Translations under genes and position numbers: made by a program | Shown: positions 6,255-32,055 of the stretch, one piece after another | Numbering within the stretch: the stretch's first letter is position 1 | Layout: every line of letters starts with the position of its first letter | The notes under the pieces: model-generated | Told to the model about the DNA's origin: nothing | What the model saw: only the letters and a program-made list of their open reading frames with translations | Databases searched by the model: none | NCBI GenBank assembly: GCA_025594325.1 | Contig: JANHCV010000016.1 | Coordinates: 372,001-436,000 of the forward strand | Length of the DNA: 64,000 nt | Direction of reading: 5' to 3' | Source: Blastocladiella emersonii ATCC 22665 | Taxonomy: Eukaryota > Fungi > Blastocladiomycota

Positions 6255-9200
6255 ATGGGCAGCAGCGTCGAGCCCGGCGATCCCGCCGGGCCGTCTTTCT
6301 CTAAAAAGCCGCGGTTTTCGCGGTTCCTCGACTCGTTCTTCTTCGTTCTCTACGTCATGAAGAGCAGGAAGGAAGCGCTGCGACCCAACTACGTCTCGTC
6401 CATTGTCCACCTCATCTTCGAGTTCATCCACTACGCGGGGTTCATCCTAGCGCCCGACAGCTACTTCAACTTGTACGATCGCCGTGGATGATCGACGGGT
6501 CGCCGACCGATCGCTCTCTAACCACTCGATCGCCTTCACCGTGTAGCGGCCCGTTCACACACGCGTACGGGCAAGTCGTGACGTTTCTCCAGTTCCGGAT
6601 CCCCTTCGTGCGCGCCAACATGTTCGCGCCCGACTTTTTGATCGTGTTCTGGCTGTTCGCGGCCCTGGCCGTGGCCATCGCGTCGATCATGGCGCTCGTA
6701 ATGGTCGCCTTCGCGCGGCGCGACTTCAAGCAGCTGTGGGCCGTCAAGGCGCTCAACGTCCTCATCTCGCTGGTGCTGCAGTACTTTGTCGTGTCGAGCG
6801 TCAGCATCCTCTTGAACCCGCTCATGTGCCACCCGGCCACCAACACGCTCGTGTCGTTCAAGTCGACGCCGTGTTTCCAGCCCAGCACGTCGCTCGCGCC
6901 GGCCATCGCGGGCATCCTGGCCACGGCGATCCTCGTCCCGCTGCTCCTCGCCACGACGCTCACGTCCGTCACGCCGCGTTACCCCAAGAACGAGATCCTG
7001 GCGTGCTCGAACCCCATATTCAACATGTTCTCGGTGGTCTTCACCGTCGCGTTCGTCATCATGGGCGAGTACCTCGGCCACGGCGTGTGGCCGCCCGTCG
7101 TCTCGGCCGTGTGCTACCTCGCCATGACCGTGTTCCTCGAGTACCAGCTACTGGCGACGCTGCCGTTCCACCACGCGTCCGCGACGCGGTGGCAGAGCGC
7201 GCTGACGTGCTCGCTCATCTGGTTGTCGTTCTGCGGCCTCGTATCCGCCGCGTCGCCCACCAACTACGTCGCCGAAAACCGCGTCATCGATTTCGTCATG
7301 GTCATCGGTTTGCTGCCCGCCGGGTTCGTCGGGTCGCGCCTCGCCAAGGCGCGCATCACCACATTCAAGCGGCTCGCGATGCTGGTCCAGGTCGAGGTCG
7401 ACGCGGCCATGGCCGCGGGTCCCGACCGCGGCGGGCCCGGCGGCCGCCACCACCACGGCGGCATGCCGTCGACGGCGCACGGGTCACGCACCAACCTCAC
7501 GTCCGAGATCGGCGCGGCGCTCGCGAGCGGTATCGGTGGCAGCATTGGCGGCGCGACGCGCCTGAGCGGCGGCGGCGGGGGCGGCGGGTGCCCGGTGGTC
7601 CGTCTCGACGCGTCGACCGAGATGCTCAACGAGGCGCCGCACTCGGCACACGGCCGGCTGATCGCCAACCCGCTCGTCATGTCGCTGCTCGGCGACGTCA
7701 ACTGCGTCGAGATCGTGGGTCGGATCCTGCAGCGCACGGCGGCCTGGCACGCGGCCGAGGCGTGGTACCGCGCGGCGCTGCAGATCCACCCCAACGACGC
7801 GGCTGTGCACCTGCTGTACTGCTCCTTTGCCGACACGCTGCAGATCGAGCGGGCCGCGACGCCCGACCGCGTGCCCGTGCTGACGACGGACGCGGCGTCG
7901 TGGGACGGGATCCCGCAGCTCGAGCCGTCGCTCGCGCAGCGGTTCCTGCTCTTCTGCCGGAGCATGGACCACGAGCAAAAGGCCGCGACGCAGGACGTGA
8001 TTGCCGGCATGGATAAGCTCGATCTGCTGCAGTACGTCGAGTTCCAGCGCAGCTACACCGAGGCCAAGCGGTACCACGCCAAGTGTGTCGACTCGATCCA
8101 GCAATTCTGGGTGCTGCTCCTGTCTCGCCGCGTGCAGTTCAAGGCGTTCGAGGCGTCGGTGCGCGCCATCATGACCAACACGAGCCGCGCCGACGAGTTT
8201 TACAAGCAGCTGCTGTCGCGGGTACGTCTCGCACGAATTCCTGGCCGTGGCCGTGGTCACTCAGCGCGAGCCTGACCGCACGTGTAGTATCCGAAAGCAG
8301 CCCACATCCTGCAAGCGTACTCGGATTTCTCGCGGCTCGTGCTCAACGACAGCGAGCTGTCGGCGACGTACTCGAACCTGGCCGAGGCGGCGCGCGCCCG
8401 CGAGGAGGAGCTCGCGCGATCCGGCGGCGACCTGTCGGGCGGCGGTGGCGAGGGCGGTGGCGGCGGCATGTCGGGCGCGTCGCTCACGCACTACAGCAAG
8501 TCGGCCGTCATCACCATGGACGCGAACGGCACCATCACGGACGTGAACCCGGGCGCGCTCAAGGTGTTCGGCTACGATTCGAAGCTGAGCCTCGTGTCTC
8601 GGTACGCTCTCGCGATGACCTTTGCCGTGGTCGTGATCACCATGGCCGTGATCATGACCATGGCCGCCACCGACTTCGCGAGCTCGCGACACTCACGCCC
8701 ATGCGTTGTGTAGGAAAATCAACCTCATCGTGCCGCACCCGTGGCGGTCCTTCCACGATTTCTACCTCGAACGGTACCGCCAGACGGGTGTCAAGCGCTT
8801 CATGGGTCCGAAGCAGCGGATCTTCGGGCAGCACGCCAAGGGCTACGCATTCCCCATGGACCTGCAGGTCGTCGAGCTCAAGGGCGCGCAGCGGCTGTTC
8901 GCAGGCCTCATCACGCCCGTGGCCGACCTCGACTCGACGGCCATGATCATCATCAACAAGGAGGGCAAGATCCAGATGCACAACAAGTTTGCGACCACGA
9001 TGCTCGGGTTCTCGTCGAGCCAGATGGTCGGCGAAAACGTAAACATGATCATGCCGCCGGACCACGCCTCGCACCACGACTCGTACCTGCAGCGGTTCCT
9101 CGAGACGGGCGTGCCGCACGTCATCGGTACGACGGGCCGCTGCCTCATGGCCAAGGAAAAGTCGGGCAAGTTCATCCCCGTGTCGCTCGAGGTCAACGAG

Positions 9201-12200
9201 CTCGTCATCAACGGCGACACGTATTTTCGGGGCACGATGCTCGACCTGCGCCAGCTCACGGCCGAGGTGTGCATCACGGGCAGCGGCGAGATCAAGTCAG
9301 TCAACGACGACACGTACATCCTCTTCGGGTGGGCGCGCGACGGGCTCGTGGGCAAGAACGTCAAGATGCTGATGCCCGAGCCGTACCGGTCGTTCCACGA
9401 TAGCTATCTCGACAGGCACCGGCGCACGCGCGCGTGCGTAATGATGACCTCGCTCGAGGGCCGCATCTATCCGGCCGTGCACCGCGACGGCACCGTGTTT
9501 ACGGTGCGGATCCGCGTGCAGGCCGTGCCGAGCTCGTTTGGCGGGACCGAGCCGATGTACAAGGCGACTATTAACCGCATCAACGACAATTACGACCCGC
9601 GCGCCGAGAAGACGCGCGAGGAGAACCGCATCCAGGTCAGCATGTCCGGCCACATCACGGCCACGGGCGCCTTCTTCAAGGAGCGGTGGGCCACGCCCGA
9701 CCTGCCCGGCCGCTCGCTCGCCGTCCTGTTCCCGCCCGTCCCGCAGGCGCCGCACCAGGCCAACCTGCGCACGCTGCTCGACACCATCACGGCGTCGCTG
9801 CCCACGACCCAGTTCTACACGCTCGTCCTGCGCCGCGACAAGACGCTGCTGCCGATGCTGGTCAGCGGGTGCGAGCTCGACGACGGCATCGAGCTGCAGA
9901 CCGAAGACCTGATCCTCAAGGAGGGCCTCATCACGCTCGACGAGGCGGGCAAGATCACGCAGTCCAACGACGACTTTGCCGCGCTGGTCGGCGTCGACAT
10001 TGAGCAGCTGCTCGGCCGGCCGCTCGCGACGCACATCCAGGGCGTCGTCACGCACCCCGAGTCGGGCGGGTACGCGCGGCAGGCGCTGGCCGCGGTGCAC
10101 CGCGACGGGTCGACATTTCCTGTCAACGTCGAGGTGTGCCCGCGCACCGACCCAGAGACGGGCATGGCGAGTTTTATGGTCCGCGTCGTCCACGGGCCCA
10201 TCGCGTACAAGGTCAGCCCCGACATTATCCGCAGCCTGCACCTCGGCGGGACCCGCGGCGGCGCCGGCGAGAGCAGCTCGTCGCTGTCGCCGAGCGCCAT
10301 GTGGACGACGGCGCTGCGCCGGCCCGAGGACGGGTCCGTGCCCGACATTCTGTCGCGCAGCCACAGCCACCGGTCCAGCGACTCGATCCCCGCGGACCCG
10401 AACGGGAGCAGCGGGGGTAGCAGCACCATGGTCACGCCGGGCCAGTCGATGACCAGCCCGCAGGTCACCCGCGCCCGCGTCATCCCGCCGTCTGTCCCCG
10501 AGGACAGCGAGTCGGAGCTCGATCCTCGCGCACCTCGGGCGGCCTCGATTCAGCGCTCGGTCCGCGATCCCGCCGGTCTCGCTCCTCCTGACGAAGACGG
10601 CCTCGCGAGCGGCGGCGGCGGTGGCGGCTGTCCCGTCTTCCACGGCGGCGCAAGCCCAACGCCGACGGGTCCGCGCCGCGTGTCCGTGTCGCTCGGTGCG
10701 GCGTCCGTGATGGGCGCCGGGACCATGGACTCGGGCGCGACCGCGACCGCGACCGGGGCCAAGGTGCTCACGCTCAAGACGCCGCAGCAGCTCAAGTCGG
10801 AGACGCCGGCGAACCCGCGCATCGTCAACTCGGCGTACGACACAGACGACGACACGGTCGCGACGCAGTCGGTGGTCGACAACGCGTCCGTGTCGGGCAG
10901 CGACACGGAGAGCCAGACGACGCGCGGCGACCGCAACTCGCGGCTGATCCTCGCGTGGAAGAGCTCCAAGACGAACCCGCTGCACGGCGCGCTGCAGCGG
11001 CGGCTGTGGGTCAGCTTCATCGTGACGGCGCTCGCGGCCATCGCCGTGGTCGTCGTGTTCAGCGTCAAGGGGAAACCCGACTTCAACATGGTACGCGTCG
11101 CCGCCGACCACGTCCCGATCGTCAGCTCGATCCTGCAGAAGACGGAGCAGCTGTATTTTTGCAACGTGGTGGTGCCCGCGGCGCCCGCGCTCGCGTCGTC
11201 GCCGCTGTGCGCCGAGGACATACGCGGCAAGCTCGTTGCGTACGGCCAGCGACTGTCGGAGCTCAGCACGGCGTTCAACGCCATGTCCCGGCCGAACCAG
11301 CCCCTGCAGATCGACACGCCTGTCGACGTGTCGCTCAAGCTGTTTGTGCTCACGGACCCGCGGGCGGCGACCGAGGCAGTGATCCCCGACGTGTGGCAAG
11401 TGTTCAGTCGCATGTCGGCGGCGTGCGCGGCCATGGCCAACGTCACGGGCGACCCGACGGCCAGCCGGCATTGGAACTTTCTCACGGCCAACAAGGACCA
11501 GCTGCTGTCGACCGTCTTCTTCTTCTCGGACAAGATTGACAACGTGGTCATCAACTTTTCCAACGCAGAAACGTACTCTGTCATCATCGCGACGCTCTCG
11601 CTGCCCATCATCGCTCTCGTACGCCCTCGCTTCGCGTGACTCGAGGCCGGACTCAACACTGACCACTGAGCGACAATGTAGGCCGTGTTCCTCCTCGTGC
11701 TGTGGCCCGAGGTCCGCAACCTGAACCGCGAGCGGTCCAAGGCGCTTGTGCTGCTCACCGGAATTCCGCGGCACGTCATCCAGTATCTCGCGTACCAGGT
11801 GTACGAGCTCGACGACGCCGACTGGGAGGACGAGGACCGCGAGGAGACGCGTCCCGCCGAGGGCGAGCAGTTGCAATCCCTCTCACACTCGAGCCACGAG
11901 CACGGCGACAGCGCCGAGGCCATCGCATCGCACACCGCGGCCGCCGCGGCCGCATCGACGCATGCAGTGACGGGATCCATGGCCGCGGTTCCAGGATCGC
12001 CGTTCAACCCTCTGCACCGCGCGTCGTTCTTCCGGCCGAGCGAAAAGGACAAGAGGTCGTCCAAGCCCATGGTCGCGGGCACCGACTACCGCGCGTACGT
12101 GATCGTCGCGACGCTGTACGCGTGGATCATGATCCCGTCGCTGGTCCTGGTCCTGTTCCGCCTCGCGCGCGTCCAGCAGGGCGTCCAGTGCTCGCTGCAG

Positions 12201-12993
12201 GGGATGCAGACGGCCGTTGCGTTCCACACGACCATTTAGTGCGTTTCCTTCCCCCTTGCGTTCTCTCGTCGCTCAAGCTCACACCACGTCACGGTGTAGC
12301 CCCATGGCGTCGGTCGCCCTCGAGGTTGCGCGTCCGGGCACCAACTGGACGCAGCGCGCAGCGACGCTCAACACGCAGGTGCACGACCTGCGCGTCGCGC
12401 TGCGACAGATCAACTCGCTCGTGTCGCGGTACGATGACCCGGCGCCGACGCGCGCGCTGCTCACGTCGGCGTACGCGTACACGGCGACGTCGAACATTGA
12501 CGCGTCGCTCGCGGGCACGGCTTCGTCGCGCGGGTACGCGTACGTGCTCGAGGACGCGCTGCAGGCGGTGCAGACGATCGCGGGCGCGCCCGGCGGCGGG
12601 TCGGCGCCCGACGCGAACACGCACGCGGCGCTGGCGGCGTTTCTCGGGAGTGTGCAGGGCGACCTGGATCTCGGGACGCGGCTGCTGCTGGAGCGGCACC
12701 TGGGCGATATCGACGCGGCGTCGCAGGCGGACGGCGCCATCAACCTCAACGTGCACGTTGCCGTCATCTTCCTCGTGGTCGTCGTGCACTACGGCCTCTT
12801 TCGGTTCCAGCAGCGCATGCGCGAGGACATCAAGCAGAACTGCCTGCTGCTGCTCATGGTGCCGCAGGCCGTCATCAACCGCCAGAAGCCGCTCAAGCAG
12901 TACCTGCGCGGTATCTCGCAGGGGATCAGACGGCACATGGGCGCGGCAGCGGCGGATGCGCCCGCGGGGTTGCACAGTGTGCGCAGAACGTAG
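6255..12993 (+). CDS. About 2120-aa multi-TM / TmcB-TmcC-like TPR / multi-PAS membrane sensor; 6 exons; intact copy
   Basis: Exons 6255-6472, 6547-8221, 8288-8601, 8714-11618, 11682-12238 and 12300-12993 sum to 6363 nt in one frame. N-terminal TM bundle, TPR-like helical region, three FixL-like PAS repeats with HDxYL, further degenerate PAS, C-terminal TM segments. Confidence 0.85.
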
Positions 12994-13071
12994 ATCTTAG
13001 ATTCATCGTTGATTGACAACACACACTTGGGTGGTGTCCTTGGTCGAGCGGCGGCGGCGTGCTTGTCGGGC

Positions 13072-13239
13072 TCAGGGCGCCTGCGGCTGCGGGAGGGCGA
13101 GCTCGGGCACGTTGAGGAACGGCGACGCGAAGGCGAGGTTCGCCTCGAACTGGACGGGCGCCTCGTCGGTCTTGTCGGTGGGCGCAGCGCGGGCCACCAT
13201 GGCCATGGCGATGAGAGCAAGAATGTAGAAGTGCTTCAT
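13072..13239 (-). CDS. 55-aa secreted micro-ORF, signal peptide plus PhoD pro-segment (left copy); could be a phoD remnant
   Basis: MKHFYILALIAMAMVARAAPTDKTDEAPVQFEANLAFASPFLNVPELALPQPQAP*; accATG context, strong C/G third positions, motif shared with both PhoD N-termini. Confidence 0.6.
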   Translation of the reverse strand: MKHFYILALIAMAMVARAAPTDKTDEAPVQFEANLAFASPFLNVPELALPQPQAP

Positions 13240-13322
13240 GGTGACGACGTTTGAAATGTGGTTCGGTATAACGGAAGTGTGCGTAGCAGAGTGTGTCGAC
13301 CCAGAAGCCGCCTCGTCCGCCG

Positions 13323-13372
13323 CGCGGCGCCACAGCGGTTGTCGGTGCCCCGCCGCACGCTGTGGCGCCGCG
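13323..13372. promoter_or_regulatory. 15-bp perfect inverted repeat with 20-nt loop upstream of the micro-ORF (left copy)
   Basis: Mirror of 24551-24600: CGCGGCGCCACAGCG-N20-CGCTGTGGCGCCGCG. Confidence 0.4.
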
Positions 13373-13667
13373 CCACTTCCCTCCTCGCCTTCACGTCATC
13401 CAGCGGCCCACGTGACGACCTGCGCCACCATCCTTCCCTCTTCTCCGCGGTCGCCCCTCGGCCGATGCTCGCTCCCTTGTGACCGCCACCGTCTACCACA
13501 CGTTTGTCTTCGCTTCCCGCCCAACCCACTCCTGCTCTTCCTGTCACGTCTGGGCCGCTGGCGTCCCCTCCCCTAGCCGTGGGATCGCTGCTCCTCGTGG
13601 CCCTCCCTCGCCCCGCGCCGCGCGCTTGGCGAGGTCGACGCGGCCCGCGGTCGCACGCACCCTGGGG

Positions 13668-14100
13668 ACCGAGCCTCACCTCGGTACGGCGAGTCCGCCG
13701 TTCCTCGGCGGGCGCTACTCAGCTTTTCGCTGGTCCCCAACGCGCGCGTAGCGGATCTACGCATCACCTCCTTCACCTTCACCTTCACCACCTGCTCCCG
13801 CTCCTCGATCCTCTCTCCGGCCGGCACCCAATCTCCGTCACCATCTTTCCGCTCTCCCACTCCTCTCCTTCGCCTTCGCTCGCATCACACCCTCGCCTCC
13901 TGCCCGCTTTCCTCCGCACACCCACCCTCTCGTTCGCCTGCCATCGTCTGCTTTCATATATCGGATTCTGTTTCTCCCAAGCGGCTTCGCCAGGGCGATA
14001 CCCCGTCGGCAAGTCCGAGGAGCCCGGCGGCCACACCGTGCAAGTAGGATGCACTCGCACAGCGTCTCCAAGAGACTCGAGCCTTCTACTAGGGTCCTGA
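13668..14100 (-). pseudogene. Putative 5' portion of a gene interrupted by the duplication (gene Y)
   Basis: Minus strand is open up to the arm boundary (APAEERRTRRTEVRLG) after an acceptor-like GCTGAGTAG; joins in frame to 31181. Start not identifiable. Confidence 0.3.
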
Positions 14101-14138
14101 TGACACGTTGCGGTGAGCTACAATTCGCCAAATATCAT

Positions 14139-14184
14139 GGGGGTAGAGCTCGAGCTAGCCAGGGGGTAGAGATCGAGCTAGCCA
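14139..14184. repeat. Tandem 23-bp direct repeat, 1 mismatch
   Basis: GGGGGTAGAGCTCGAGCTAGCCA followed by GGGGGTAGAGATCGAGCTAGCCA. Confidence 0.85.
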
Positions 14185-14432
14185 AAGTCGGTCGACGTGT
14201 TGGACGACCTCCGCGTCGCGTCGCGTCGCGACGTGCAAGGCTGCGCCACAACGTGATTTCGCGGCGCGTCTCGCAGCGTGTCTCGCACTTCTCCGACGCT
14301 TCAATCCGAGCGACACAACCCTGCAAAAGCGCTCGTAGGTCCACAGAGACGTCAAGAGACCTCACTGAATTGCGCGGATTGAGAGATGAAACATGGAAAC
14401 TGTATGCAATGAGCAGCTCAATACTACTACGC

Positions 14433-16316
14433 CTAGGCAATGTACGACGACGTGATCCGGTTCGACCCATGGGCGCTCTCAAACGCCGCGCCGAGGAGCT
14501 CGGCGTCGCCGTCGCGGCTCTTGATGGAGCGCACGTACCAGTACTCGTTACGGACCTTCTCCTTGGTGAAGGTCGTGAGCATGTACCCGTGGCGGTACAG
14601 GTCGACGTACTTGGCGCCCTTTTTGAACAGCTTCACGACGGGTGCGCCGAGCTTGTTGAGGAAGCCCGAGTCCTGCGCGGGGGTGCTCGAGGTGACGCTC
14701 GGGCCGGCAAACTCGACCATCAGGGACCCCTTGCCGCTCGATTTGTCGTACTCCGAGTCCAGGTACACGTCCAACGCGATACTCGAGTGGAAGTCGCCGG
14801 TAAGCGTGAGGATCGGCGGGTGCTTCTTGTCGCGGAGAACACGCAGGAGGTTGTCGCGCGTCGTCGGGTAGCCGACCCACATGTCGCCCGTGACCGACCA
14901 CTCGTACTCGAAGATCTTCTCGGGCATCTGTGCGATGATCACCTGGTTGGCGAGCACCACCCAGTGCGCCGTCGAGTTGGTGATGGTGCCGTGCAGCCAC
15001 TTCTCCTGGTCGTCGCCCATCATCTTGCGCAGCGGCCGCTCCTTGCCCGTCCATCCGTTGCCGCCGGGGGCCGTGCGCTCGGACCGCGTGTCGAGCATCG
15101 CCAGGTCGATGAAGGACCCGTACTGGAACTTGCGCCAGAACTTGAGCATCTCGCCCACGGCCTGCGGGCGGATCGGCATGTACTCGAAGTACGCGCGGCC
15201 AGCAGCGAGCTAGATAGAGCCCGATCGTTAGCGTGGCACGCCGAGCATGTCTCGTGAGACGCGAATGTACCTTGCGCACGGCCCACGGACCGTCCTTGGC
15301 GTCCGAGTGCTTGAACGAGCCGTTGGTCCACGTGTTGTCGGCAAACTCGTGGTCGTCGGGGATCGCGAGCCACGGGAGCAGGGCGAGCATGGCCTGCTGG
15401 TCCTTGTCGCGCTTGTACTGGGCGTGGCGGGCGCGGTAGTCGGCGAGCGTCGTGATGACCTTGGCCGGGATCGGGTCGCGCTCGGGACCCATGTTGCCGC
15501 CGACCGGCTGGTAGCCATCGAGGTCGTACTCGTAGCTACGGGCGCGAGGAGCGGGAGAGGTCAGTGCGGACCGCGAGTGATCGCGGCAGCGAGTCGCGAA
15601 CGTACATGGCGTCGCCAAGCATCAAGACGGCGTCAATCTCGCTGGCGCGCTTGGCAATGTTGCGGTAGGCGTGGAACAGGCCGTGCGGCATATTGGCGCA
15701 CGAGACGACGGCGAACTTGACCGAGTTGAGGTTCGCGCCGGGCGCGGGCAGCGTCTTTGTGGTGCCGACGGGCGACGTGACGCCGTTGGCCGAGAAACGG
15801 TAGTAGTAGCGCGTCGCGGGCGAGAGACCCGTCACGTCGACCTTGACCGTGTAGTCGATGTCGGCCGAGGTGAGGACCGCGCCGGACTTGATGATGGCCG
15901 AAAAGTCCGCGGTCGTCGCGACCTCGTACGTCACGGCGACCGAGGCGTCCTTGCTCGTCACCTTGGTCCAGAGGATCACGGCGTCGGCGAGCGTGTCTAG
16001 ATGATGCGTGGGTGGGAGTGTGAGCGAACGAAGTGACTGGAGTTCGTCGCGAGAGTGACGTACCGCCCGAGGCGATGCCGTGGTCGAACGTGACTGCGCC
16101 AGCATCGCGCTTGCGCAGGGCATGATCGAGCGCCGCATCCGAAGGCGCCAGCGCGAGATCGGGAAGGTTCGAGTAGGGCGAGGCGTAGGCGAGGTTGTCG
16201 GCGTAGCGGGAGACGAGCGCGGCCGGGTCGGCGGCGGCCTCGGGCGCGGCGGCGTTGGCCACCGCGGCGACCAGGGCCGTTGCCACAAGGAGGAGGGTGA
16301 TGGGAAGGCGCGCCAT
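14433..16316 (-). CDS. phoD: Secreted PhoD-type alkaline phosphatase, paralog 1; 4 exons
   Basis: Signal peptide; pro-segment ending LRKR; FDHGIASGD..VILWT, VSCAN, LGDAIYEY, DDHEFADN, LDTR, TGDFH. Introns 15997-16063, 15536-15605, 15210-15270. Confidence 0.93.
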
Positions 16317-17229
16317 GGTTGCGGCGGCCCAGCAGTCTATAAGTTGTCTATCTGGGGGCAAAGGGGAGGGAGGGCGAGCCGAACCCTGAAAATCGGCAAG
16401 TCGGCGACAACATCCGGTGACACGCGGTACGCGCTTGCATGCAAGGGACCTCATGACCGTGGTGGCGCAGCCGCACCGACAGAAGTGACGCAACCGCGGC
16501 AAGCGTGCATCGGCCCGCGTTTCAGGTCGTGCGGGAGAACCGGCGGCACGCTCGAAATTAATTGCTGTCCACGTGCACGCCCATTGTCCTCGGTGTGGCG
16601 AAGGCGCGCGTACGCGCGGCCGGCGACCACGCTCGCGTGCGGCTGCGACCAGGGCTGCGACCTCCTGCGACCCGCGACTGCACCAAGCTCGCAGCCCGCT
16701 GCTCCATCACCATCGACGACACGAGGCTGCCCGCATCCCAAGTGCCGGACCAAGTCGGCGACGGGCGGGAAGCCACTGCTCGTCAAGTGCAACGGCTGCC
16801 AAACCTTGAGAGGCCGGCGATCCGCTTCGTCCGCGGTCGGGGGTGGCCCACAGTGCGCCGGGGTACGCCAGCTCGATCCCTTGCGCCGGATCACTCGGTG
16901 TCCCGTTTGCAAGCGTGGTGGCCCCACTGTGGCGAGACGCGTCGTCGGTTTGAAACAAGGACGAGCGAGTCCGCGCGTGCCCTCGCGACCGCAAAGGCAA
17001 CGTTGGTTTGCACTGCAAAAATGAAGTTACGCAGGGAGGATCGGGAAATACACCGCGCGCTTGCCTTTCATTTTTAATCACGGCGGGGTCCCCGCACATG
17101 CGGGGGTTTCCGACCTTGGCCGTTGGCCCTTCAAAGGTCGACGTCGCTCTGCCCTCTCTCCTCCCCCATCCTCTACCCATACCTTTGGTTCAGCTGCTTC
17201 GCGAACATCTCTTGAGGGTCCCCCGTCAA

Positions 17230-20200: not shown

Positions 20201-20381
20201 CGCGTCCGAGTCGGCCCCGTCGCCCGCGGTCGATATCAAGGCTGCCGACTCGGCTGTCGCCGCCGCGCTCGCCAACGTCGCGTCCTCGGCCTCGGGGACG
20301 CCGCTGACGAGTCCGTCTCGCACCACCACCACCACCACCACCACCACAACGGCTTCCACCACCACCCCCTCAGCGGCCTGA
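17230..20381 (+). CDS. C2H2 zinc-finger transcription factor, two C-terminal fingers, Crz1-like finger spacing; 2 exons
   Basis: CGFDDCAARFSRNHDLKRHERIHTGEK linker and CLECERAFGRRDALARHTSAPGGRC; basic NLS-like KRKR. Intron 17789-18120 (GTACGC..CTAAC..CAG), phase 1, links the two ORFs. Confidence 0.85.
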
Positions 20382-20883
20382 CGACGGCCGCCGATCCCCC
20401 TTCCTCACCACCCACACCCACGCTCACCTTGTACATCTCATCTCACCCTCGCACCCTCGCACGCTTGCATCGCCGTCCTCCCCTACCTTAGACTATGACC
20501 CCCTCGTCGCCTTGTATAAAATATCCGCCGCTCATTTTGACCATTCCATTCGTTTGCCCGCCCTCCTCGTCGACCGCCAAGGTCAGGCGCGATACGCGGC
20601 GTCGAGGGTTTGCACACAAGACAAGGGGCGGCGAGTTGTGGCGGCGGCCTGCGGCGCTGGGTTCAGCGCCCTGGCCGGCGCCCCATGTGGACCTTTCTCA
20701 CACGGAATCCCTCACAAACGCTCCCGCTCTCCCCGCACTCTCGACGAAGCTGTTGTTGTTGTATCATAGACCTGCGCTTGGCGATCACACACTTAGACAT
20801 AGACGACGGCGGCCATCTCGCAGACTTCCTCGACGCTCCCGTCCCTGCCGCCACCAACCACCACCACCTCCTCCTACACCACC

Positions 20884-23027
20884 ATGGCCGTCGCCCGGAC
20901 CCGCCGCTCGATGCGGTCGACGCACCTCCTCCTTCTCCTGCTCGTCGCCGCGGTGCTGTGTGTCCGCACGACGCACGCCATCGAGATCGGCGGCTCGATC
21001 ACGACTGCCAACACCGAGTCCGTGGCCGCGGCCAACGACGCGGGTGCCGACGACGATGACGACTTCCTGCCGCCCGTCGAGGAGCTGATCGACCACGTCG
21101 AGGACAACATCGCCTTCAAGTCGCCCTTCTCCAACATCCCCGACCTCGCCGTCCCGCTCCACGACGAGCACAAGCGCTCCATCATGCTCGAGCGCCGCGA
21201 GCCCCGCCGTAACGGCGGCGGCAGCCGGCCCAAGGTCGCGCAGGGGTCGGTCCAGTTCAACCACGGCCTCGCTTCTGGCGGTACGATCATGACGGTTGTT
21301 CCGCTGTACTTGAAACGAGCCGCGTCGCGGCAGCCCCAGCCCTCATTGTCTGCGTGCGCCTGACCAGACCCCTGTTTATAGACCCACTCGAGGACCGTGT
21401 GATCCTCTGGACCCGGGTGACGCCCGCGACGCCGCGGCCGGTGCCCGTGACCGTCACGTACGAGGTGGCAACGGACGCGCACTTCCGTCGCATCGTGCGC
21501 CGCGGCGCGGTCCTCACGTCGCCCGACGTCGACTACACGGTCAAGGTTGACGTCAAGCAGCTGTCGCCGCTCACCACCTACTACTACCGGTTCAAGGTGC
21601 CCGCCGCCGGCACCACGTCGCCCGTCGGCCGCACCAAGACGCTGCCGCGGCCCGGCGCCAAGGTCGACGCCCTCAAGATCGCCGTCGTGACGTGCATCAA
21701 CGCCCCGCACGGGTTCTTCCACGCCCTCGGGCATATCGCCGGGCGTAACGATATCGACCTCGTCTACGGCGCGGGCGACTCCATGTACGTGTTTGCGACG
21801 CGTTTGTGGCTCGGATCACGGCTCCCATCACCAACTCACCTCGACCACTCCCACCTCGTGTCTAGCTACGAGTACTCGCTCGAGGCGTACCCGAGCCCCA
21901 TCAAGGCCATGCCTGCGTCGCGGAACCCGCAGCCGGCCAAGATCATCGCCACGCTGTCCGACTACCGCATCCGCCACGCCCAGTACAAGGCCGACGCCAA
22001 CATGAAAAAGTTCCTGGCCTCGGTCCCGTACGTCGTGACGCTCGACGACCACGAGCTCGCCGACAACGCGTGGGCCGGCGGTTCGCAGGACCACCGCGAC
22101 AGCGTCAACGGGCCGTGGTCTGCTCGCAAGGTACGGCCGCTGCATCTTCCTTCGCCCATGTTTGCCACACCCGACTGACCTCACTCCTTGTCTATAGCTC
22201 GCCGGTCTGCGCGCCTTCCACGAGTTCATGCCGATCCGCCCGGCCAAGGCCGAGGGCGAGCTGCTGCGCGTGTACCGCAAGTTCCAGTACGGCAGCCTCG
22301 TGGACATGGTGATCCTCGACACGCGGTCCGACGGCCGCGACCAGCAGGCCAAGGGCAACCGCGACACGCGCCGGCTTATCGGCAAGGCGCAGGAGAAGTG
22401 GCTGTACGACTCGCTCGGCTCGAGTCGTGCGACCTGGCGCCTGATCGGCAACCAGGTCCTGTTCGCGCCGGTCCCGCAGAAGATCCTCAAGTGGGAGATT
22501 GAGGTGACGAGCGATACGGTACGGTGACTGGGTGGGTGGGGAGTGGGCTCGAGTTGTCGCTGACTTACGACTTCATGTAGTGGTCGGGCTACCCCGCGGC
22601 CCGTAGCGGCCTCCTCAACTTCCTCCGCGACCACAAAATCAACGACACCGCGTGTATCACGGGAGACTTACATGCTTCTTACGCCAGCAACCTGTTTATT
22701 GACGGGAAATACGACAAGAGTTCGGGCGCGGGGTCCCTGATGACCGAATTCGTCGCCCCGTCGGTCACCTCGGCCACCCCCGTCAACGACAACTGGTTCC
22801 TCGCCAAGCTCGCCGGCCCGGTCCTCGGCTGGTTCAATAAGGGCGCCAAGTACATTGACCTCAAGCGCCACGGGTACATCACGATCGACTTGACCAAGCA
22901 GCGCCTCCGCACTGAGTACTGGTTCACCGATAATGTCAAGGAGGCCGACGGCGACCACCATTACCTCGGTGCCGCCTTCGAGCAGCGCGCCGGGTCCAAC
23001 CGGATTACGTGGATGCGCGAGTACTGA
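20884..23027 (+). CDS. phoD: Secreted PhoD-type alkaline phosphatase, paralog 2; 5 exons
   Basis: Signal peptide; FNHGLASGDP..VILWT, VTCIN, GDSIYEY, DDHELADN, LDTR, TGDLH. Introns 21281-21381, 21785-21865, 22131-22197, 22519-22580. Confidence 0.93.
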
Positions 23028-23105
23028 GTGCGCGCGAGCGCTAGCAATGAGCATTTTGTACCACTACACAGCCTGATCCTTGACCTGATCGACGTGAGCA
23101 ACGCG

Positions 23106-23106
23106 T

Positions 23107-23141
<35 letters not shown>

Positions 23142-23146
23142 CCCTC
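23106..23146. repeat. Hexamer microsatellite (CTCGTC/CTCGCC)n
   Basis: tcctcgtcctcgtcctcgccctcgccctcgccctcgccctcg read directly. Confidence 0.75.
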
Positions 23147-23561
23147 GAAACGCGTCGTAACCCTGAGTGGTTGATGAACTCCTTGACAGCAGTCAGCGAC
23201 CAGCGCAGATCCGGTTCCGTGGTTCCGAACCAGGTTCCAAACCGTGGTCAGCCTTGGCCCACGTTGGCCACCACGAGCGATGGATGGTTTGCAAACCAGC
23301 TTCCTTTGCGGGGTTAGAGCACCAGACGGCGCCTGCACGAGCACGTTCTCGTCGTCTTCGGTTGACCGCACCGGCTCCCTGCTCTCGCATCAGGATCAGG
23401 GTCTTGATGAAGTTGTAGATCCGGGCTCGACCTCGCTCACACCAACACAACGCGCGAACCCAGCGAGCTCGATCCACCCAAGCGCCTTCCCATCGCCCTC
23501 ATCAACTTCAGCCGCCTAGCGCGCGTCGCGCCGCGAACATCTCGAACCATTGCTCGAAACG

Positions 23562-23567
23562 ATGCGA

Positions 23568-23603
<36 letters not shown>

Positions 23604-24218
23604 TCGCCCGACCGGCCCGAGCCCGTGCGGATCAACCCGTACAGCGGCGAGAGCTTCGCCATGACGGTGAAGCCTGAGTACGAGTACGGGTTCGGCCGCG
23701 AACGCGGCAGCAGCATGTCGTTTGACAACCCGCCGCCCGCGAAGCCTGCGCCTCCACGGCCCCGTATCGACCGAAAATGCTGCTTCGGCTGCATGGACAT
23801 CAAGGCGGGCGTGATCCTCCTGCTCATCCTGAATCTCTTCGTCGGCCTGCTCCTGTTCTGCGCGCTCATCGTCTTCGGCGCGCTGTTCACCAAGGACACG
23901 AGGATCGACTCGGTCTACCTCGTCGCGTACATCGGGATCCTGGCGTGGGGCGCGTGGACGGTCGGCCGCGGCCACCTCGCCGGGTTCCGGTTCTTTGTCG
24001 GTGCCCGAGTCGGCATCACGCTGCTCGAGCTCGCCGCCATGATCGCGCCCGTCATCTTCTGGCCGGCTAACCCGGACCGCGACGACACTTCGCTGCTCCA
24101 GATGATTCCCGTCAACGCATTCGAGGTGTTCATGACCGTCGTATGCTGGCGGTACATTCCCGTCATGGCCGCCGAGTCCGAGGCCAGGGCGGCAGCAGCA
24201 GCGGCCCGGCTCCCCTAG
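23562..24218 (+). CDS. Four-TM membrane protein with CCxxC juxtamembrane motif (LAPTM/tetraspanin-like topology)
   Basis: KCCFGCMDIKAG followed by four hydrophobic segments; SN-repeat N-terminus from an AACAGC repeat; intronless. Confidence 0.75.
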
Positions 24219-24550
24219 TACATGATTGCATCAAGATAAATAGCGTTTTCATTCACCCCAGGGTGCGTGCGACCGCGGGCCGCGTCGACCTCGCCAAGCG
24301 CGCGGCGCGGGGCGAGGGAGGGCCACGAGGAGCAGCGATCCCACGGCTAGGGGAGGGGACGCCAGCGGCCCAGACGTGACAGGAAGAGCAGGAGTGGGTT
24401 GGGCGGGAAGCGAAGACAAACGTGTGGTAGACGGTGGCGGTCACAAGGGAGCGAGCATCGGCCGAGGGGCGACCGCGGAGAAGAGGGAAGGATGGTGGCG
24501 CAGGTCGTCACGTGGGCCGCTGGATGACGTGAAGGCGAGGAGGGAAGTGG

Positions 24551-24600
24551 CGCGGCGCCACAGCGTGCGGCGGGGCACCGACAACCGCTGTGGCGCCGCG
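24551..24600. promoter_or_regulatory. 15-bp perfect inverted repeat with 20-nt loop about 85 bp upstream of the micro-ORF ATG (right copy)
   Basis: 24551-24565 CGCGGCGCCACAGCG pairs with 24586-24600 CGCTGTGGCGCCGCG. Confidence 0.4.
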
Positions 24601-24683
24601 CGGCGGACGAGGCGGCTTCTGGGTCGACACACTCTGCTACGCACACTTCCGTTATACCGAACCACATTTCAAACGTCGTCACC

Positions 24684-24851
24684 ATGAAGCACTTCTACAT
24701 TCTTGCTCTCATCGCCATGGCCATGGTGGCCCGCGCTGCGCCCACCGACAAGACCGACGAGGCGCCCGTCCAGTTCGAGGCGAACCTCGCCTTCGCGTCG
24801 CCGTTCCTCAACGTGCCCGAGCTCGCCCTCCCGCAGCCGCAGGCGCCCTGA
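24684..24851 (+). CDS. 55-aa secreted micro-ORF, signal peptide plus PhoD pro-segment (right copy)
   Basis: Same sequence as 13072-13239; ATG 24684, TGA 24849-24851. Confidence 0.6.
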   Translation: MKHFYILALIAMAMVARAAPTDKTDEAPVQFEANLAFASPFLNVPELALPQPQAP

Positions 24852-24929
24852 GCCCGACAAGCACGCCGCCGCCGCTCGACCAAGGACACCACCCAAGTGT
24901 GTGTTGTCAATCAACGATGAATCTAAGAT

Positions 24930-27900
24930 CTACGTTCTGCGCACACTGTGCAACCCCGCGGGCGCATCCGCCGCTGCCGCGCCCATGTGCCGTCTGATCC
25001 CCTGCGAGATACCGCGCAGGTACTGCTTGAGCGGCTTCTGGCGGTTGATGACGGCCTGCGGCACCATGAGCAGCAGCAGGCAGTTCTGCTTGATGTCCTC
25101 GCGCATGCGCTGCTGGAACCGAAAGAGGCCGTAGTGCACGACGACCACGAGGAAGATGACGGCAACGTGCACGTTGAGGTTGATGGCGCCGTCCGCCTGC
25201 GACGCCGCGTCGATATCGCCCAGGTGCCGCTCCAGCAGCAGCCGCGTCCCGAGATCCAGGTCGCCCTGCACACTCCCGAGAAACGCCGCCAGCGCCGCGT
25301 GCGTGTTCGCGTCGGGCGCCGACCCGCCGCCGGGCGCGCCCGCGATCGTCTGCACCGCCTGCAGCGCGTCCTCGAGCACGTACGCGTACCCGCGCGACGA
25401 AGCCGTGCCCGCGAGCGACGCGTCAATGTTCGACGTCGCCGTGTACGCGTACGCCGACGTGAGCAGCGCGCGCGTCGGCGCCGGGTCATCGTACCGCGAC
25501 ACGAGCGAGTTGATCTGTCGCAGCGCGACGCGCAGGTCGTGCACCTGCGTGTTGAGCGTCGCTGCGCGCTGCGTCCAGTTGGTGCCCGGACGCGCAACCT
25601 CGAGGGCGACCGACGCCATGGGGCTACACCGTGACGTGGTGTGAGCTTGAGCGACGAGAGAACGCAAGGGGGAAGGAAACGCACTAAATGGTCGTGTGGA
25701 ACGCAACGGCCGTCTGCATCCCCTGCAGCGAGCACTGGACGCCCTGCTGGACGCGCGCGAGGCGGAACAGGACCAGGACCAGCGACGGGATCATGATCCA
25801 CGCGTACAGCGTCGCGACGATCACGTACGCGCGGTAGTCGGTGCCCGCGACCATGGGCTTGGACGACCTCTTGTCCTTTTCGCTCGGCCGGAAGAACGAC
25901 GCGCGGTGCAGAGGGTTGAACGGCGATCCTGGAACCGCGGCCATGGATCCCGTCACTGCATGCGTCGATGCGGCCGCGGCGGCCGCGGTGTGCGATGCGA
26001 TGGCCTCGGCGCTGTCGCCGTGCTCGTGGCTCGAGTGTGAGAGGGATTGCAACTGCTCGCCCTCGGCGGGACGCGTCTCCTCGCGGTCCTCGTCCTCCCA
26101 GTCGGCGTCGTCGAGCTCGTACACCTGGTACGCGAGATACTGGATGACGTGCCGCGGAATTCCGGTGAGCAGCACAAGCGCCTTGGACCGCTCGCGGTTC
26201 AGGTTGCGGACCTCGGGCCACAGCACGAGGAGGAACACGGCCTACATTGTCGCTCAGTGGTCAGTGTTGAGTCCGGCCTCGAGTCACGCGAAGCGAGGGC
26301 GTACGAGAGCGATGATGGGCAGCGAGAGCGTCGCGATGATGACAGAGTACGTTTCTGCGTTGGAAAAGTTGATGACCACGTTGTCAATCTTGTCCGAGAA
26401 GAAGAAGACGGTCGACAGCAGCTGGTCCTTGTTGGCCGTGAGAAAGTTCCAATGCCGGCTGGCCGTCGGGTCGCCCGTGACGTTGGCCATGGCCGCGCAC
26501 GCCGCCGACATGCGACTGAACACTTGCCACACGTCGGGGATCACTGCCTCGGTCGCCGCCCGCGGGTCCGTGAGCACAAACAGCTTGAGCGACACGTCGA
26601 CAGGCGTGTCGATCTGCAGGGGCTGGTTCGGCCGGGACATGGCGTTGAACGCCGTGCTGAGCTCCGACAGTCGCTGGCCGTACGCAACGAGCTTGCCGCG
26701 TATGTCCTCGGCGCACAGCGGCGACGACGCGAGCGCGGGCGCCGCGGGCACCACCACGTTGCAAAAATACAGCTGCTCCGTCTTCTGCAGGATCGAGCTG
26801 ACGATCGGGACGTGGTCGGCGGCGACGCGTACCATGTTGAAGTCGGGTTTCCCCTTGACGCTGAACACGACGACCACGGCGATGGCCGCGAGCGCCGTCA
26901 CGATGAAGCTGACCCACAGCCGCCGCTGCAGCGCGCCGTGCAGCGGGTTCGTCTTGGAGCTCTTCCACGCGAGGATCAGCCGCGAGTTGCGGTCGCCGCG
27001 CGTCGTCTGGCTCTCCGTGTCGCTGCCCGACACGGACGCGTTGTCGACCACCGACTGCGTCGCGACCGTGTCGTCGTCTGTGTCGTACGCCGAGTTGACG
27101 ATGCGCGGGTTCGCCGGCGTCTCCGACTTGAGCTGCTGCGGCGTCTTGAGCGTGAGCACCTTGGCCCCGGTCGCGGTCGCGGTCGCGCCCGAGTCCATGG
27201 TCCCGGCGCCCATCACGGACGCCGCACCGAGCGACACGGACACGCGGCGCGGACCCGTCGGCGTTGGGCTTGCGCCGCCGTGGAAGACGGGACAGCCGCC
27301 ACCGCCGCCGCCGCTCGCGAGGCCGTCTTCGTCAGGAGGAGCGAGACCGGCGGGATCGCGGACCGAGCGCTGAATCGAGGCCGCCCGAGGTGCGCGAGGA
27401 TCGAGCTCCGACTCGCTGTCCTCGGGGACAGACGGCGGGATGACGCGGGCGCGGGTGACCTGCGGGCTGGTCATCGACTGGCCCGGCGTGACCATGGTGC
27501 TGCTACCCCCGCTGCTCCCGTTCGGGTCCGCGGGGATCGAGTCGCTGGACCGGTGGCTGTGGCTGCGCGACAGAATGTCGGGCACGGACCCGTCCTCGGG
27601 CCGGCGCAGCGCCGTCGTCCACATGGCGCTCGGCGACAGCGACGAGCTGCTCTCGCCGGCGCCGCCGCGGGTCCCGCCGAGGTGCAGGCTGCGGATAATG
27701 TCGGGGCTGACCTTGTACGCGATGGGCCCGTGGACGACGCGGACCATAAAACTCGCCATGCCCGTCTCTGGGTCGGTGCGCGGGCACACCTCGACGTTGA
27801 CAGGAAATGTCGACCCGTCGCGGTGCACCGCGGCCAGCGCCTGCCGCGCGTACCCGCCCGACTCGGGGTGCGTGACGACGCCCTGGATGTGCGTCGCGAG

Positions 27901-30900
27901 CGGCCGGCCGAGCAGCTGCTCAATGTCGACGCCGACCAGCGCGGCAAAGTCGTCGTTGGACTGCGTGATCTTGCCCGCCTCGTCGAGCGTGATGAGGCCC
28001 TCCTTGAGGATCAGGTCTTCGGTCTGCAGCTCGATGCCGTCGTCGAGCTCGCACCCGCTGACCAGCATCGGCAGCAGCGTCTTGTCGCGGCGCAGGACGA
28101 GCGTGTAGAACTGGGTCGTGGGCAGCGACGCCGTGATGGTGTCGAGCAGCGTGCGCAGGTTGGCCTGGTGCGGCGCCTGCGGGACGGGCGGGAACAGGAC
28201 GGCGAGCGAGCGGCCGGGCAGGTCGGGCGTGGCCCACCGCTCCTTGAAGAAGGCGCCCGTGGCCGTGATGTGGCCGGACATGCTGACCTGGATGCGGTTC
28301 TCCTCGCGCGTCTTCTCGGCGCGCGGGTCGTAATTGTCGTTGATGCGGTTAATAGTCGCCTTGTACATCGGCTCGGTCCCGCCAAACGAGCTCGGCACGG
28401 CCTGCACGCGGATCCGCACCGTAAACACGGTGCCGTCGCGGTGCACGGCCGGATAGATGCGGCCCTCGAGCGAGGTCATCATTACGCACGCGCGCGTGCG
28501 CCGGTGCCTGTCGAGATAGCTATCGTGGAACGACCGGTACGGCTCGGGCATCAGCATCTTGACGTTCTTGCCCACGAGCCCGTCGCGCGCCCACCCGAAG
28601 AGGATGTACGTGTCGTCGTTGACTGACTTGATCTCGCCGCTGCCCGTGATGCACACCTCGGCCGTGAGCTGGCGCAGGTCGAGCATCGTGCCCCGAAAAT
28701 ACGTGTCGCCGTTGATGACGAGCTCGTTGACCTCGAGCGACACGGGGATGAACTTGCCCGACTTTTCCTTGGCCATGAGGCAGCGGCCCGTCGTACCGAT
28801 GACGTGCGGCACGCCCGTCTCGAGGAACCGCTGCAGGTACGAGTCGTGGTGCGAGGCGTGGTCCGGCGGCATGATCATGTTTACGTTTTCGCCGACCATC
28901 TGGCTCGACGAGAACCCGAGCATCGTGGTCGCAAACTTGTTGTGCATCTGGATCTTGCCCTCCTTGTTGATGATGATCATGGCCGTCGAGTCGAGGTCGG
29001 CCACGGGCGTGATGAGGCCTGCGAACAGCCGCTGCGCGCCCTTGAGCTCGACGACCTGCAGGTCCATGGGGAATGCGTAGCCCTTGGCGTGCTGCCCGAA
29101 GATCCGCTGCTTCGGACCCATGAAGCGCTTGACACCCGTCTGGCGGTACCGTTCGAGGTAGAAATCGTGGAAGGACCGCCACGGGTGCGGCACGATGAGG
29201 TTGATTTTCCTACACAACGCATGGGCGTGAGTGTCGCGAGCTCGCGAAGTCGGTGGCGGCCATGGTCATGATCACGGCCATGGTGATCACGACCACGGCA
29301 AAGGTCATCGCGAGAGCGTACCGAGACACGAGGCTCAGCTTCGAATCGTAGCCGAACACCTTGAGCGCGCCCGGGTTCACGTCCGTGATGGTGCCGTTCG
29401 CGTCCATGGTGATGACGGCCGACTTGCTGTAGTGCGTGAGCGACGCGCCCGACATGCCGCCGCCACCGCCCTCGCCACCGCCGCCCGACAGGTCGCCGCC
29501 GGATCGCGCGAGCTCCTCCTCGCGGGCGCGCGCCGCCTCGGCCAGGTTCGAGTACGTCGCCGACAGCTCGCTGTCGTTGAGCACGAGCCGCGAGAAATCC
29601 GAGTACGCTTGCAGGATGTGGGCTGCTTTCGGATACTACACGTGCGGTCAGGCTCGCGCTGAGTGACCACGGCCACGGCCAGGAATTCGTGCGAGACGTA
29701 CCCGCGACAGCAGCTGCTTGTAAAACTCGTCGGCGCGGCTCGTGTTGGTCATGATGGCGCGCACCGACGCCTCGAACGCCTTGAACTGCACGCGGCGAGA
29801 CAGGAGCAGCACCCAGAATTGCTGGATCGAGTCGACACACTTGGCGTGGTACCGCTTGGCCTCGGTGTAGCTGCGCTGGAACTCGACGTACTGCAGCAGA
29901 TCGAGCTTATCCATGCCGGCAATCACGTCCTGCGTCGCGGCCTTTTGCTCGTGGTCCATGCTCCGGCAGAAGAGCAGGAACCGCTGCGCGAGCGACGGCT
30001 CGAGCTGCGGGATCCCGTCCCACGACGCCGCGTCCGTCGTCAGCACGGGCACGCGGTCGGGCGTCGCGGCCCGCTCGATCTGCAGCGTGTCGGCAAAGGA
30101 GCAGTACAGCAGGTGCACAGCCGCGTCGTTGGGGTGGATCTGCAGCGCCGCGCGGTACTACGCCTCGGCCGCGTGCCAGGCCGCCGTGCGCTGCAGGATC
30201 CGACCCACGATCTCGACGCAGTTGACGTCGCCGAGCAGCGACATGACGAGCGGGTTGGCGATCAGCCGGCCGTGTGCCGAGTGCGGCGCCTCGTTGAGCA
30301 TCTCGGTCGACGCGTCGAGACGGACCACCGGGCACCCGCCGCCCCCGCCGCCGCCGCTCAGGCGCGTCGCGCCGCCAATGCTGCCACCGATACCGCTCGC
30401 GAGCGCCGCGCCGATCTCGGACGTGAGGTTGGTGCGTGACCCGTGCGCCGTCGACGGCATGCCGCCGTGGTGGTGGCGGCCGCCGGGCCCGCCGCGGTCG
30501 GGACCCGCGGCCATGGCCGCGTCGACCTCGACCTGGACCAGCATCGCGAGCCGCTTGAATGTGGTGATGCGCGCCTTGGCGAGGCGCGACCCGACGAACC
30601 CGGCGGGCAGCAAACCGATGACCATGACGAAATCGATGACGCGGTTTTCGGCGACGTAGTTGGTGGGCGACGCGGCGGATACGAGGCCGCAGAACGACAA
30701 CCAGATGAGCGAGCACGTCAGCGCGCTCTGCCACCGCGTCGCGGACGCGTGGTGGAACGGCAGCGTCGCCAGTAGCTGGTACTCGAGGAACACGGTCATG
30801 GCGAGGTAGCACACGGCCGAGACGACGGGCGGCCACACGCCGTGGCCGAGGTACTCGCCCATGATGACGAACGCGACGGTGAAGACCACCGAGAACATGT

Positions 30901-31193
30901 TGAATATGGGGTTCGAGCACGCCAGGATCTCGTTCTTGGGGTAACGCGGCGTGACGGACGTGAGCGTCGTGGCGAGGAGCAGCGGGACGAGGATCGCCGT
31001 GGCCAGGATGCCCGCGATGGCCGGCGCGAGCGACGTGCTGGGCTGGAAACACGGCGTCGACTTGAACGACACGAGCGTGTTGGTGGCCGGGTGGCACATG
31101 AGCGGGTTCAAGAGGATGCTGACGCTCGACACGACAAAGTACTGCAGCACCAGCGAGATGAGGACGTTGAGCGCCTTGACCGCCCACAGCTGC
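24930..31193 (-). pseudogene. 5'-truncated, nonsense-carrying copy of the PAS sensor gene
   Basis: Lacks the promoter, exon 1 and the first ~180 nt of exon 2; TGG(Trp) at 7763-7765 is TAG here (30158-30160). Confidence 0.85.
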
Positions 31194-32055
31194 CTGAGGT
31201 CTTCATTCATCCTGATGAGTTGAAGGCGGTCACGGTCAAACGCCCTGACATTCTCTCGCCAAGGTTCTACAACCGTGATAAACAGGATGTTCCGCAGGCG
31301 ATGCGGGCCTTCAATGCGGAAGTGCTCAAGGTGCTTCCCAACGCGCCCCACAGCGTGTGCTTTTGGTTGCTCAACGCTTGCCGCATGCTTCACGACTCGG
31401 TCGACGCCCGCGACCCTTCTTTTGCGCAGCGCTACCAAGAGGTCATGCATTTCCGGCGAGTATGGTGCCGCTTGTTTGCAGGACCGCTCACCGCGACTTC
31501 ATCGCCTCCGCAGCACGTTCTGAACTGGCCGGTTAAAATGATCGAGGGCATGTTCTCCATCGCCGAGTCGTTCTTGTCCATGCACGCCGCTTACGCTCGG
31601 GCGAACGTGGGCAAGCTCAACGTTCCTCCCTTAGTGGCGCGAGTGGGCACGAGCGACGCGGACGAGAACTTGTTCTCGGAAATCCGCTTTGCATTGCAGC
31701 AGGACGGGAGGGCGATCAGCAACCGCTTGTCGCACGCAGACATCTCACTTAAGCTCAGCAAGATCTACGCGTTCATGAGTCTCGCCATGGTTTCACACGC
31801 GGAACGAGGATACTTTCATTTCCCCGTCCGTCGCCACAGCACCCGACCAATGCGATGCTTGGTAGCCCGGACAGCCCGTTCCTCCTCGGCCGGACAATCG
31901 ACATGATCGAGCGCACGAGGACAATCCGTGCTGTACGAGCCCTCGCTCATCGCGATGGCGCAGGCCGAGGTCGCGCACGAGCAGGTCGCTCAGCGCTGCC
32001 CGCGCTGCGCCACAAGTCGCTTGATTCCGTCGCGGTTAGTGATACACGTGTATAA
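31181..32055 (+). pseudogene. Headless 3' portion of an unknown gene (gene Y) abutting the outer end of the right arm
   Basis: About 240 open codons (RPQLPEVFIHPDELK...RGYFHF) of globular composition with no start or promoter, since the upstream sequence is the antisense PAS copy; probable intron near 31826-31864; AT-rich 3' end about 32050-32090. Confidence 0.55.

Follow-up and report, generated by a model that had tools for sequence, protein, structure and literature searches.

The question raised by a pair of long inverted repeats in the genome of the fungus Blastocladiella emersonii ATCC 22665 is whether the block of genes enclosed by them behaves as an invertible cassette, or whether the repeats are the passive outcome of an inverted duplication. 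The repeats are found within a 64-kb stretch, referred to here as the window, which comprises positions 372001–436000 of contig JANHCV010000016.1 (561,733 nucleotides, nt) in assembly GCA_025594325.1. A preliminary description of this stretch had proposed a candidate flip-flop locus, possibly present in both orientations and recently formed around a set of phosphate-scavenging genes. As argued below, we consider it probable that the locus is instead a real interstitial inverted segmental duplication, either young or copy-corrected, whose second copy is a dead-end fragment, rather than a programmed flip-flop switch. The coordinates of all features discussed are collected in Table 1 and are numbered from the first base of the window.

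A repeat search of the window returned only one long inverted pair, consisting of two arms of 6,946 nt each separated by a unique spacer of 10,588 nt. When paired base by base (i + j = 37923), the arms are reverse complements with four mismatches (left/right positions 6725/31198, 6729/31194, 6742/31181 and 7764/30159), and blastn yields an arm-to-arm identity of 99.942% over 6,946 nt. The arms originally reported at 6730–13667 and 24256–31193 with two differences, one of them at 30159, were reproduced exactly base by base, although the homology extends 8 nt further outward on each arm and thereby takes in two additional mismatches. Three of the four mismatches (6725, 6729 and 6742 in left-arm numbering) fall within the outermost 21 nt of the arms, while the last 21 nt of the inner edge contain none and the interior differs at a single position in approximately 6,900 nt. 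Similarity is lost abruptly at both arm ends, and in the 500–1,500 nt beyond the outer ends local alignment performed no better than it did on shuffled sequences, revealing no decayed homology. No tRNA genes were found in the window, and a tandem repeat scan returned nothing relevant at the arm junctions. The locus is therefore an inverted segmental duplication, or spaced palindrome, in which two near-identical copies of opposite orientation surround a unique spacer.

Read-derived evidence indicates that both copies are physically present in the genome. This region is present in four public runs of the same sample, which we analyzed in the form of k=31 contigs over positions 28200–34100. The interval takes in 2.9 kb of right flank together with the outermost 3 kb of the right arm, within which both arm-specific sites fall. 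In the 2022 run (X1), whose depth fits high-fidelity (HiFi) data, word depth is 322.5 and 314.3 for the arm contigs versus 148.2 and 147.7 for the flank contigs, which yields a ratio of 2.1–2.2, as would be expected of two copies. Run X3 exhibits a similar pattern (9.71 for the arm vs 3.97 for the flank, ~2.4x), as does the noisier run X2 (51–54 vs 21–39). The X1 arm contig stops at 31180, one base short of the arm-specific site at 31181. A single-depth contig of 838 nt (31151–31988), which begins 30 nt before this site and carries its right-arm allele, spans the junction between the right arm and the right flank. X2 contains this 838-nt bridging contig as well, and in X3 the same junction is spanned by a contig of 1,331 nt (30555–31885). 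In a de Bruijn graph, a repeat present twice should produce this combination of an arm contig ending before 31181 and a single-depth branch through the junction. Both alleles of the internal mismatch also occur among the runs, as position 30159 is C in the X1 contig and T in those of X2 and X3. The earlier suggestion that the second copy is real is thus borne out by the roughly 2.2x arm depth, the single-depth branch into the right flank and the two alleles at 30159. Where an artefact would have left single-copy arm depth and unsupported junctions, the junction of the right arm with the right flank is bridged and the arm depth is approximately twofold.

Two other features of the run data were encountered during these comparisons. 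In X4, a contig end at 31623 reads AATAACTTCGTATAGCATACAT, which is the loxP sequence, and this run is probably a Cre-lox circularised mate-pair library. In addition, many X1 contigs from elsewhere end at 30338–30358 (equivalent to 7565–7585), where the summed depth spikes to ~800; this segment encodes a GGC-rich poly-Gly run, and its low complexity may be the reason for the pile-up of contigs.

The two copies are not equivalent, and their relationship to other members of the sensor family reveals the polarity of the event. Three full-length paralogues (P0005, P0007 and P0017, of which P0005 and P0007 are the nearest full-length sensor relatives and lie on other contigs of the same genome) align to the left copy from position 6276 onward through 6722, but to the right copy only from 31201–31207 inward. 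Because the paralogues align across the arm boundary at 6722 on the left and only inward on the right, the left gene is the intact parent, and as judged from these alignments the left arm is the parental copy and the right arm is derived from it. The copied stretch holds the 3' ~94% of the sensor gene and a neighbouring open reading frame (ORF) of 55 amino acids (aa), introns included. The annotated ATG of the right copy is a product of the junction itself, being formed from the reverse complement of a duplicated octamer (described below) plus base 31210. Furthermore, the sole internal difference between the arms converts TGG to TAG in the right copy. The public gene model removes this TAG as an in-frame "intron" of 51 nt (30158–30208, minus strand), the acceptor AG of which is the stop codon itself; the intron is probably an artefact of annotating a pseudogene. 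The missing N-terminus and the premature stop together lead us to regard the right arm as a truncated, pseudogene-like fragment and not as a second sensor gene.

The junctions of the right arm also retain what appears to be the scar of its insertion. The octamer TTCATTCA abuts both the inner and the outer end of the right arm, and these are its only two occurrences on either strand of the 64-kb window, in which 0.28 would be expected; no comparable direct repeat flanks the left arm. Both right-arm joins are blunt, with an 8-nt target duplication, and neither exhibits microhomology, such that TTCATTCA is the only junction repeat. No poly(A) was found at the right arm, and there are no terminal inverted repeats, as the arm ends (CCCCAGGGTGCG... 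and ...CTGAGGTC, also ...GCCTGAGGTC) show no complementarity. The outer arm end falls within a coding exon. We also considered whether the insertion had split a pre-existing gene by rebuilding four ancestral joins (L/U-start, U-end/R, L/rcU-end and rcU-start/R, with U being the spacer), and this candidate was rejected; only U-end/R with one octamer copy gives an ORF through the join, and upstream of the join that ORF reads the membrane-protein gene in another frame.

Based upon these features, a plausible course of events can be proposed. A copy of a 6,946-bp stretch would have been placed, with its orientation reversed, 10.6 kb downstream of the original, in an AT-richer intergenic stretch adjoining a possible transposase-like relic. 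A break staggered by 8 nt would have left TTCATTCA on both sides of the insert, and we infer this mechanism from the junctions. The new copy is a dead end, lacking the native N-terminus and now interrupted by its premature stop. The pair of arms serves as a passive substrate for homologous recombination, in which a crossover would invert the phoD1–zinc finger–phoD2 block and gene conversion between the arms would keep them alike. The single interior difference in ~6,900 nt, the sharp boundaries and the intact target duplication all fit a young event.

The putative relic is an unannotated ORF in the right flank (31202–31906), a region in which there is no annotated gene between 31210 and 32615. 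With one of the two octamer copies taken out, its frame stays open across the insertion site, and it continues past its stop to ~32095. According to a protein language model, the whole ORF matches clusters of the GTP-binding insertion domain and RNaseH_C (score 0.96, 199 shared features), and residues 105–234 alone match RNaseH_C clusters (0.96), an arrangement that is colinear with the domain order of P-element/THAP9 transposases. The same ORF had no Pfam match, no PDB relative and no homologue in database searches, and its single-sequence AlphaFold2 model was poor (pLDDT 45.6).

Several other explanations for the locus deserve consideration. If the second arm were an assembly artefact, it would have to be a chimeric or palindromic mis-join or an uncollapsed haplotig, and near-perfect palindromes are indeed a known type of artefact. 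According to the genome paper, 605,547 PacBio HiFi reads (SRR19593111) with a mean length of 10.5 kb, amounting to 6.37 Gb, were used to build a 34.27-Mb assembly with the La Jolla Assembler (LJA), followed by purge_dups, by a manual step that took out duplicated contigs and by polishing in Pilon with Illumina GAIIx reads (PMC9730499), and the fact that both purge_dups and manual removal were required lends this explanation some initial appeal. These figures correspond to a HiFi coverage of ~186x, and with a mean read of 10.5 kb at such coverage, reads exceeding the arm length existed to thread the arm. The text available to us makes no mention of the repeat. Against an artefact stand the arm depths (2.1–2.2x in X1 and ~2.4x in X3), the branching of the arm unitig at an arm-specific base, the bridging of the junction in three runs and the two alleles at 30159. 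Moreover, the flank depth of ~148 fits full, not half, genome coverage (6.37 Gb over 34.27 Mb), and we therefore regard an artefact as extremely improbable. Since a de Bruijn assembler outputs only junctions that are borne by reads, any residual doubt presumably attaches to spacer orientation and not to whether the junctions exist.

A transposase may also have been responsible for the insertion, either through integration by a DDE transposase or through a repair event that copied the sensor region into an excision gap within a P-like relic. P and hAT elements generate 8-bp target duplications, the size of the exact duplication found here, and the ORF at the insertion site resembles P-element/THAP9 domains in colinear order. 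Despite these parallels, terminal inverted repeats are missing from the arm, its outer end lies within a coding exon, the P-like assignment failed every sequence-based test and the structural model is too poor to be of use. For these reasons, a transposase-mediated origin seems to us improbable. A somewhat more credible alternative, albeit one that we still consider unlikely, is that the palindrome is old and has been homogenised by arm-to-arm gene conversion in the manner of sex-chromosome palindromes, with inversions of the spacer arising as a regular by-product. Such a history could explain why three of the four differences crowd into the outermost 21 nt, a stretch beyond the reach of conversion tracts. 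An old palindrome would be less readily reconciled with the octamer directly outside the arm being intact at all eight positions, with the lack of decayed homology past either boundary, with an inner edge whose last 21 nt are free of mismatches, or with a nonsense mutation in the derived copy that has been neither erased nor spread.

The proposal of an actively flipping cassette, which would exist in both orientations at appreciable frequency in cultures and might affect the phosphate-scavenging genes, must be evaluated separately. A crossover between inverted repeats inverts the spacer between them, and in Candida albicans, inversions of 3.1 kb and ~32 kb associated with ORF-bearing inverted repeats have been validated (PMC6591007). 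Inverted arms of 6.9 kb with 99.94% identity are an efficient recombination substrate, and flipping by arm recombination is possible, as it is for any long inverted repeat. However, no recombinase or transposase domain was detected among the large ORFs tested with Pfam or among the annotated genes of the locus, which encode only the sensor, two PhoD proteins, a C2H2 zinc-finger protein, a membrane protein and micro-ORFs, and no short recombination sites were found at the locus. All four spacer genes have their own intergenic regions inside the spacer. As these genes would keep their own upstream regions and the arms are identical over 6.9 kb, a flip would rewire no promoter or gene. The assembled orientation is informative as well. 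With the octamer flanking the right arm, the reference corresponds to the birth isomer, whereas after an odd number of flips one octamer would now adjoin the left arm. In addition, the de Bruijn HiFi assembler gave a single uninterrupted path within the 561-kb contig, which would seem to argue against a balanced mixture of isomers, in which the arm-spanning reads would have contradicted one another. Consequently, a functional flip-flop switch is unlikely, and active flipping at appreciable frequency is decidedly so; any flipping that does occur would presumably be rare and passive. The claim of a variant centred on phosphate-scavenging genes fares no better, as the phosphatase genes are incidental and a flip changes no link between promoter and gene.

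A number of observations nonetheless weigh against a young, non-programmed insertion with a derived right arm, and these should be considered together. The concentration of mismatches at the outer edge has a probability of ~1e-7 under uniform scatter by our own arithmetic, and this suggests either error-prone synthesis at the junction end or an older repeat with a gene-converted interior, the latter of which would favour greater age. Next, there is no terminal inverted repeat or other mark that would account for an 8-nt staggered break. Concerning the reads, the assembly and the contigs of X2 and X3 have the TAG allele at 30159, while the sole X1 contig at this position has the TGG allele, so the assignment of TAG to the right arm rests on the assembly. 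At the inner junction (24255/24256), 4/4 sampled 31-mers of a spanning 80-mer occur in X1–X3, a result with which the presence of this junction is consistent, although at most one of these words crosses the junction. Lastly, an inversion between identical arms makes no new local junction, so only molecules spanning >7 kb tell the isomers apart, and the k=31 contigs of the runs are blind to a mixture of orientations. Even with these points taken into account, a young or copy-corrected inverted segmental duplication is, in our view, the probable explanation of the locus.

Table 1. Positions of the arms, junction features and genes of the inverted duplication in the window.
Feature	Position	Strand	Description
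Left arm A	6722..13667	+	Parental copy, as judged from paralogues whose alignment continues past its outer edge to the left flank; contains most of the TmcB-TPR/PAS sensor gene and the 55-aa micro-ORF
Right arm A'	24256..31201	-	Derived inverted copy, as judged from the same alignments; 10.6 kb downstream of parent; flanked by 8-nt duplication
Spacer U	13668..24255		phoD1 (-), C2H2 zinc-finger gene (+), phoD2 (+), 218-aa membrane protein gene (+)
Arm mismatch cluster	6725..6742	+	In right copy: Phe>Leu, Lys>Arg and one synonymous change
Target-site duplication, copy 1	24248..24255	+	TTCATTCA; abuts inner end of A'
Target-site duplication, copy 2	31202..31209	+	TTCATTCA; abuts outer end of A'
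Intact sensor gene	6255..12993	+	2,128 aa; TPR_TmcB and PAS domains
Truncated sensor copy P0004	24930..31210	-	Annotated as 1,975 aa, starting MNEDLRQ; lacks conserved N-terminal exon region
Premature TAG, right copy	30158..30160	-	TGG (Trp) in left copy at 7763-7765; codon 351 from the junction ATG
55-aa micro-ORF	13072-13239 / 24684-24851	- / +	Annotated; one copy per arm
phoD1	14433..16316	-	561 aa; PhoD_N and PhoD
C2H2 zinc-finger gene H9P43_009991	17380..20381	+	889 aa; spacer ORF 100% identical
phoD2	20884..23027	+	610 aa; old paralogue of phoD1
218-aa predicted membrane protein gene	23562..24218	+	Ends 37 nt before insertion site
Unannotated 234-codon ORF	31202..31906	+	Right flank; P-element/THAP9 transposase-like (GTP-binding insertion domain and RNaseH_C), a language-model lead only

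The genes within and around the arms bear on the mirror-like appearance of the locus. The gene order is as previously described, except that the right-hand "PAS" gene is the 5'-truncated copy with its premature stop. Within the spacer, phoD1 and phoD2 share only 50–59% amino-acid and 68–72% nucleotide identity, so much of the mirror-like appearance of the cassette stems from an inverted duplication of far greater age. For the 218-aa membrane protein gene, the only database record is from the same assembly. The 55-aa micro-ORF was considered as a potential pro-segment of PhoD and rejected, since it exhibits no BLASTP similarity to the N-terminus of either PhoD. Near its upstream region, each arm contains an imperfect local palindrome of 52 nt that is 81% self-complementary (13322–13373 and 24550–24601). 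A related segment of 112 nt is found in the right flank (32288–32399), with 80.5% identity to the arm segment upstream of the micro-ORF (13261–13356 / 24567–24662). It is an older partial third copy of that arm segment, and contigs over it sum to ~3x depth in X1 (434 vs 148 for the flank). Elsewhere in the window, the repeat scan and self-blastn also detected a diverged direct repeat with 65–78% identity (53387–54942 vs 56626–58267).

When compared with previously characterized systems, it is evident that the locus is a familiar type of structure, namely an inverted segmental duplication serving as a passive recombination substrate. Sex-chromosome palindromes and the EMD-FLNA repeats of human Xq28 undergo arm-to-arm gene conversion, and the orientation of their spacers is polymorphic as a result of non-allelic homologous recombination. 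Like these, the B. emersonii locus has gene-bearing arms of >99.9% identity around a unique spacer, but one of its arms is a truncated, stop-bearing copy and not a member of a maintained functional gene pair. In the FLP/FRT system of the yeast 2-micron plasmid and in the bacterial Hin, Gin and Fim invertons, inversion occurs at short defined sites through a dedicated site-specific recombinase encoded nearby and has a promoter or coding read-out. The parallel with the current locus is that inverted repeats flank a segment able to take two orientations; unlike these systems, it has no short sites, no nearby recombinase and no functional read-out. A closer comparison is provided by C. albicans, in which long inverted repeats, the longest being 6,499 bp, mediate chromosomal inversions (Todd et al. 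2019, PMC6591007). Both cases involve kilobase-scale, high-identity, ORF-containing inverted repeats in a fungal nuclear genome. The B. emersonii arms differ in being slightly longer (6.9 kb), in their 99.94% identity and in birth junctions with an 8-nt duplication that can still be read, and inversion between them is a possibility rather than an observed event. Alternative transposition of Ac/Ds in maize and rice also generates rearrangements and composite insertions (PMC3744419, PMC3239180, PMC8225341). As in the present case, nearby host DNA is copied to a new nearby site, inverted duplications are among the products and the target-site duplication is 8 bp. Ac/Ds products have transposon termini at their junctions, whereas none are recognisable in B. 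emersonii, and the adjacent transposase-like ORF is a weakly supported relic.

The analysis adds three things about the locus: a birth scar that can still be read as an 8-nt target duplication, the direction in which the copying went, and the finding that what is annotated as a second sensor gene is truncated and interrupted by a stop codon. Taken alone, little is at stake, as the locus is a textbook inversion substrate in which one arm is a decaying fragment annotated as a 1,975-aa protein. Its legible scars, which include the 8-nt duplication, the sharp boundary and the junction-proximal substitutions, nevertheless make it a clean case for how near-identical palindromes arise in B. emersonii. 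Should the transposase-linked origin prove to be true, it would mean that in an early-diverging fungus transposases can give rise to inverted segmental duplications, and with them to potentially invertible chromosome segments. Furthermore, the arm-specific bases and unique flanks provide ready markers for mitotic inverted-repeat recombination in a model zoosporic fungus.

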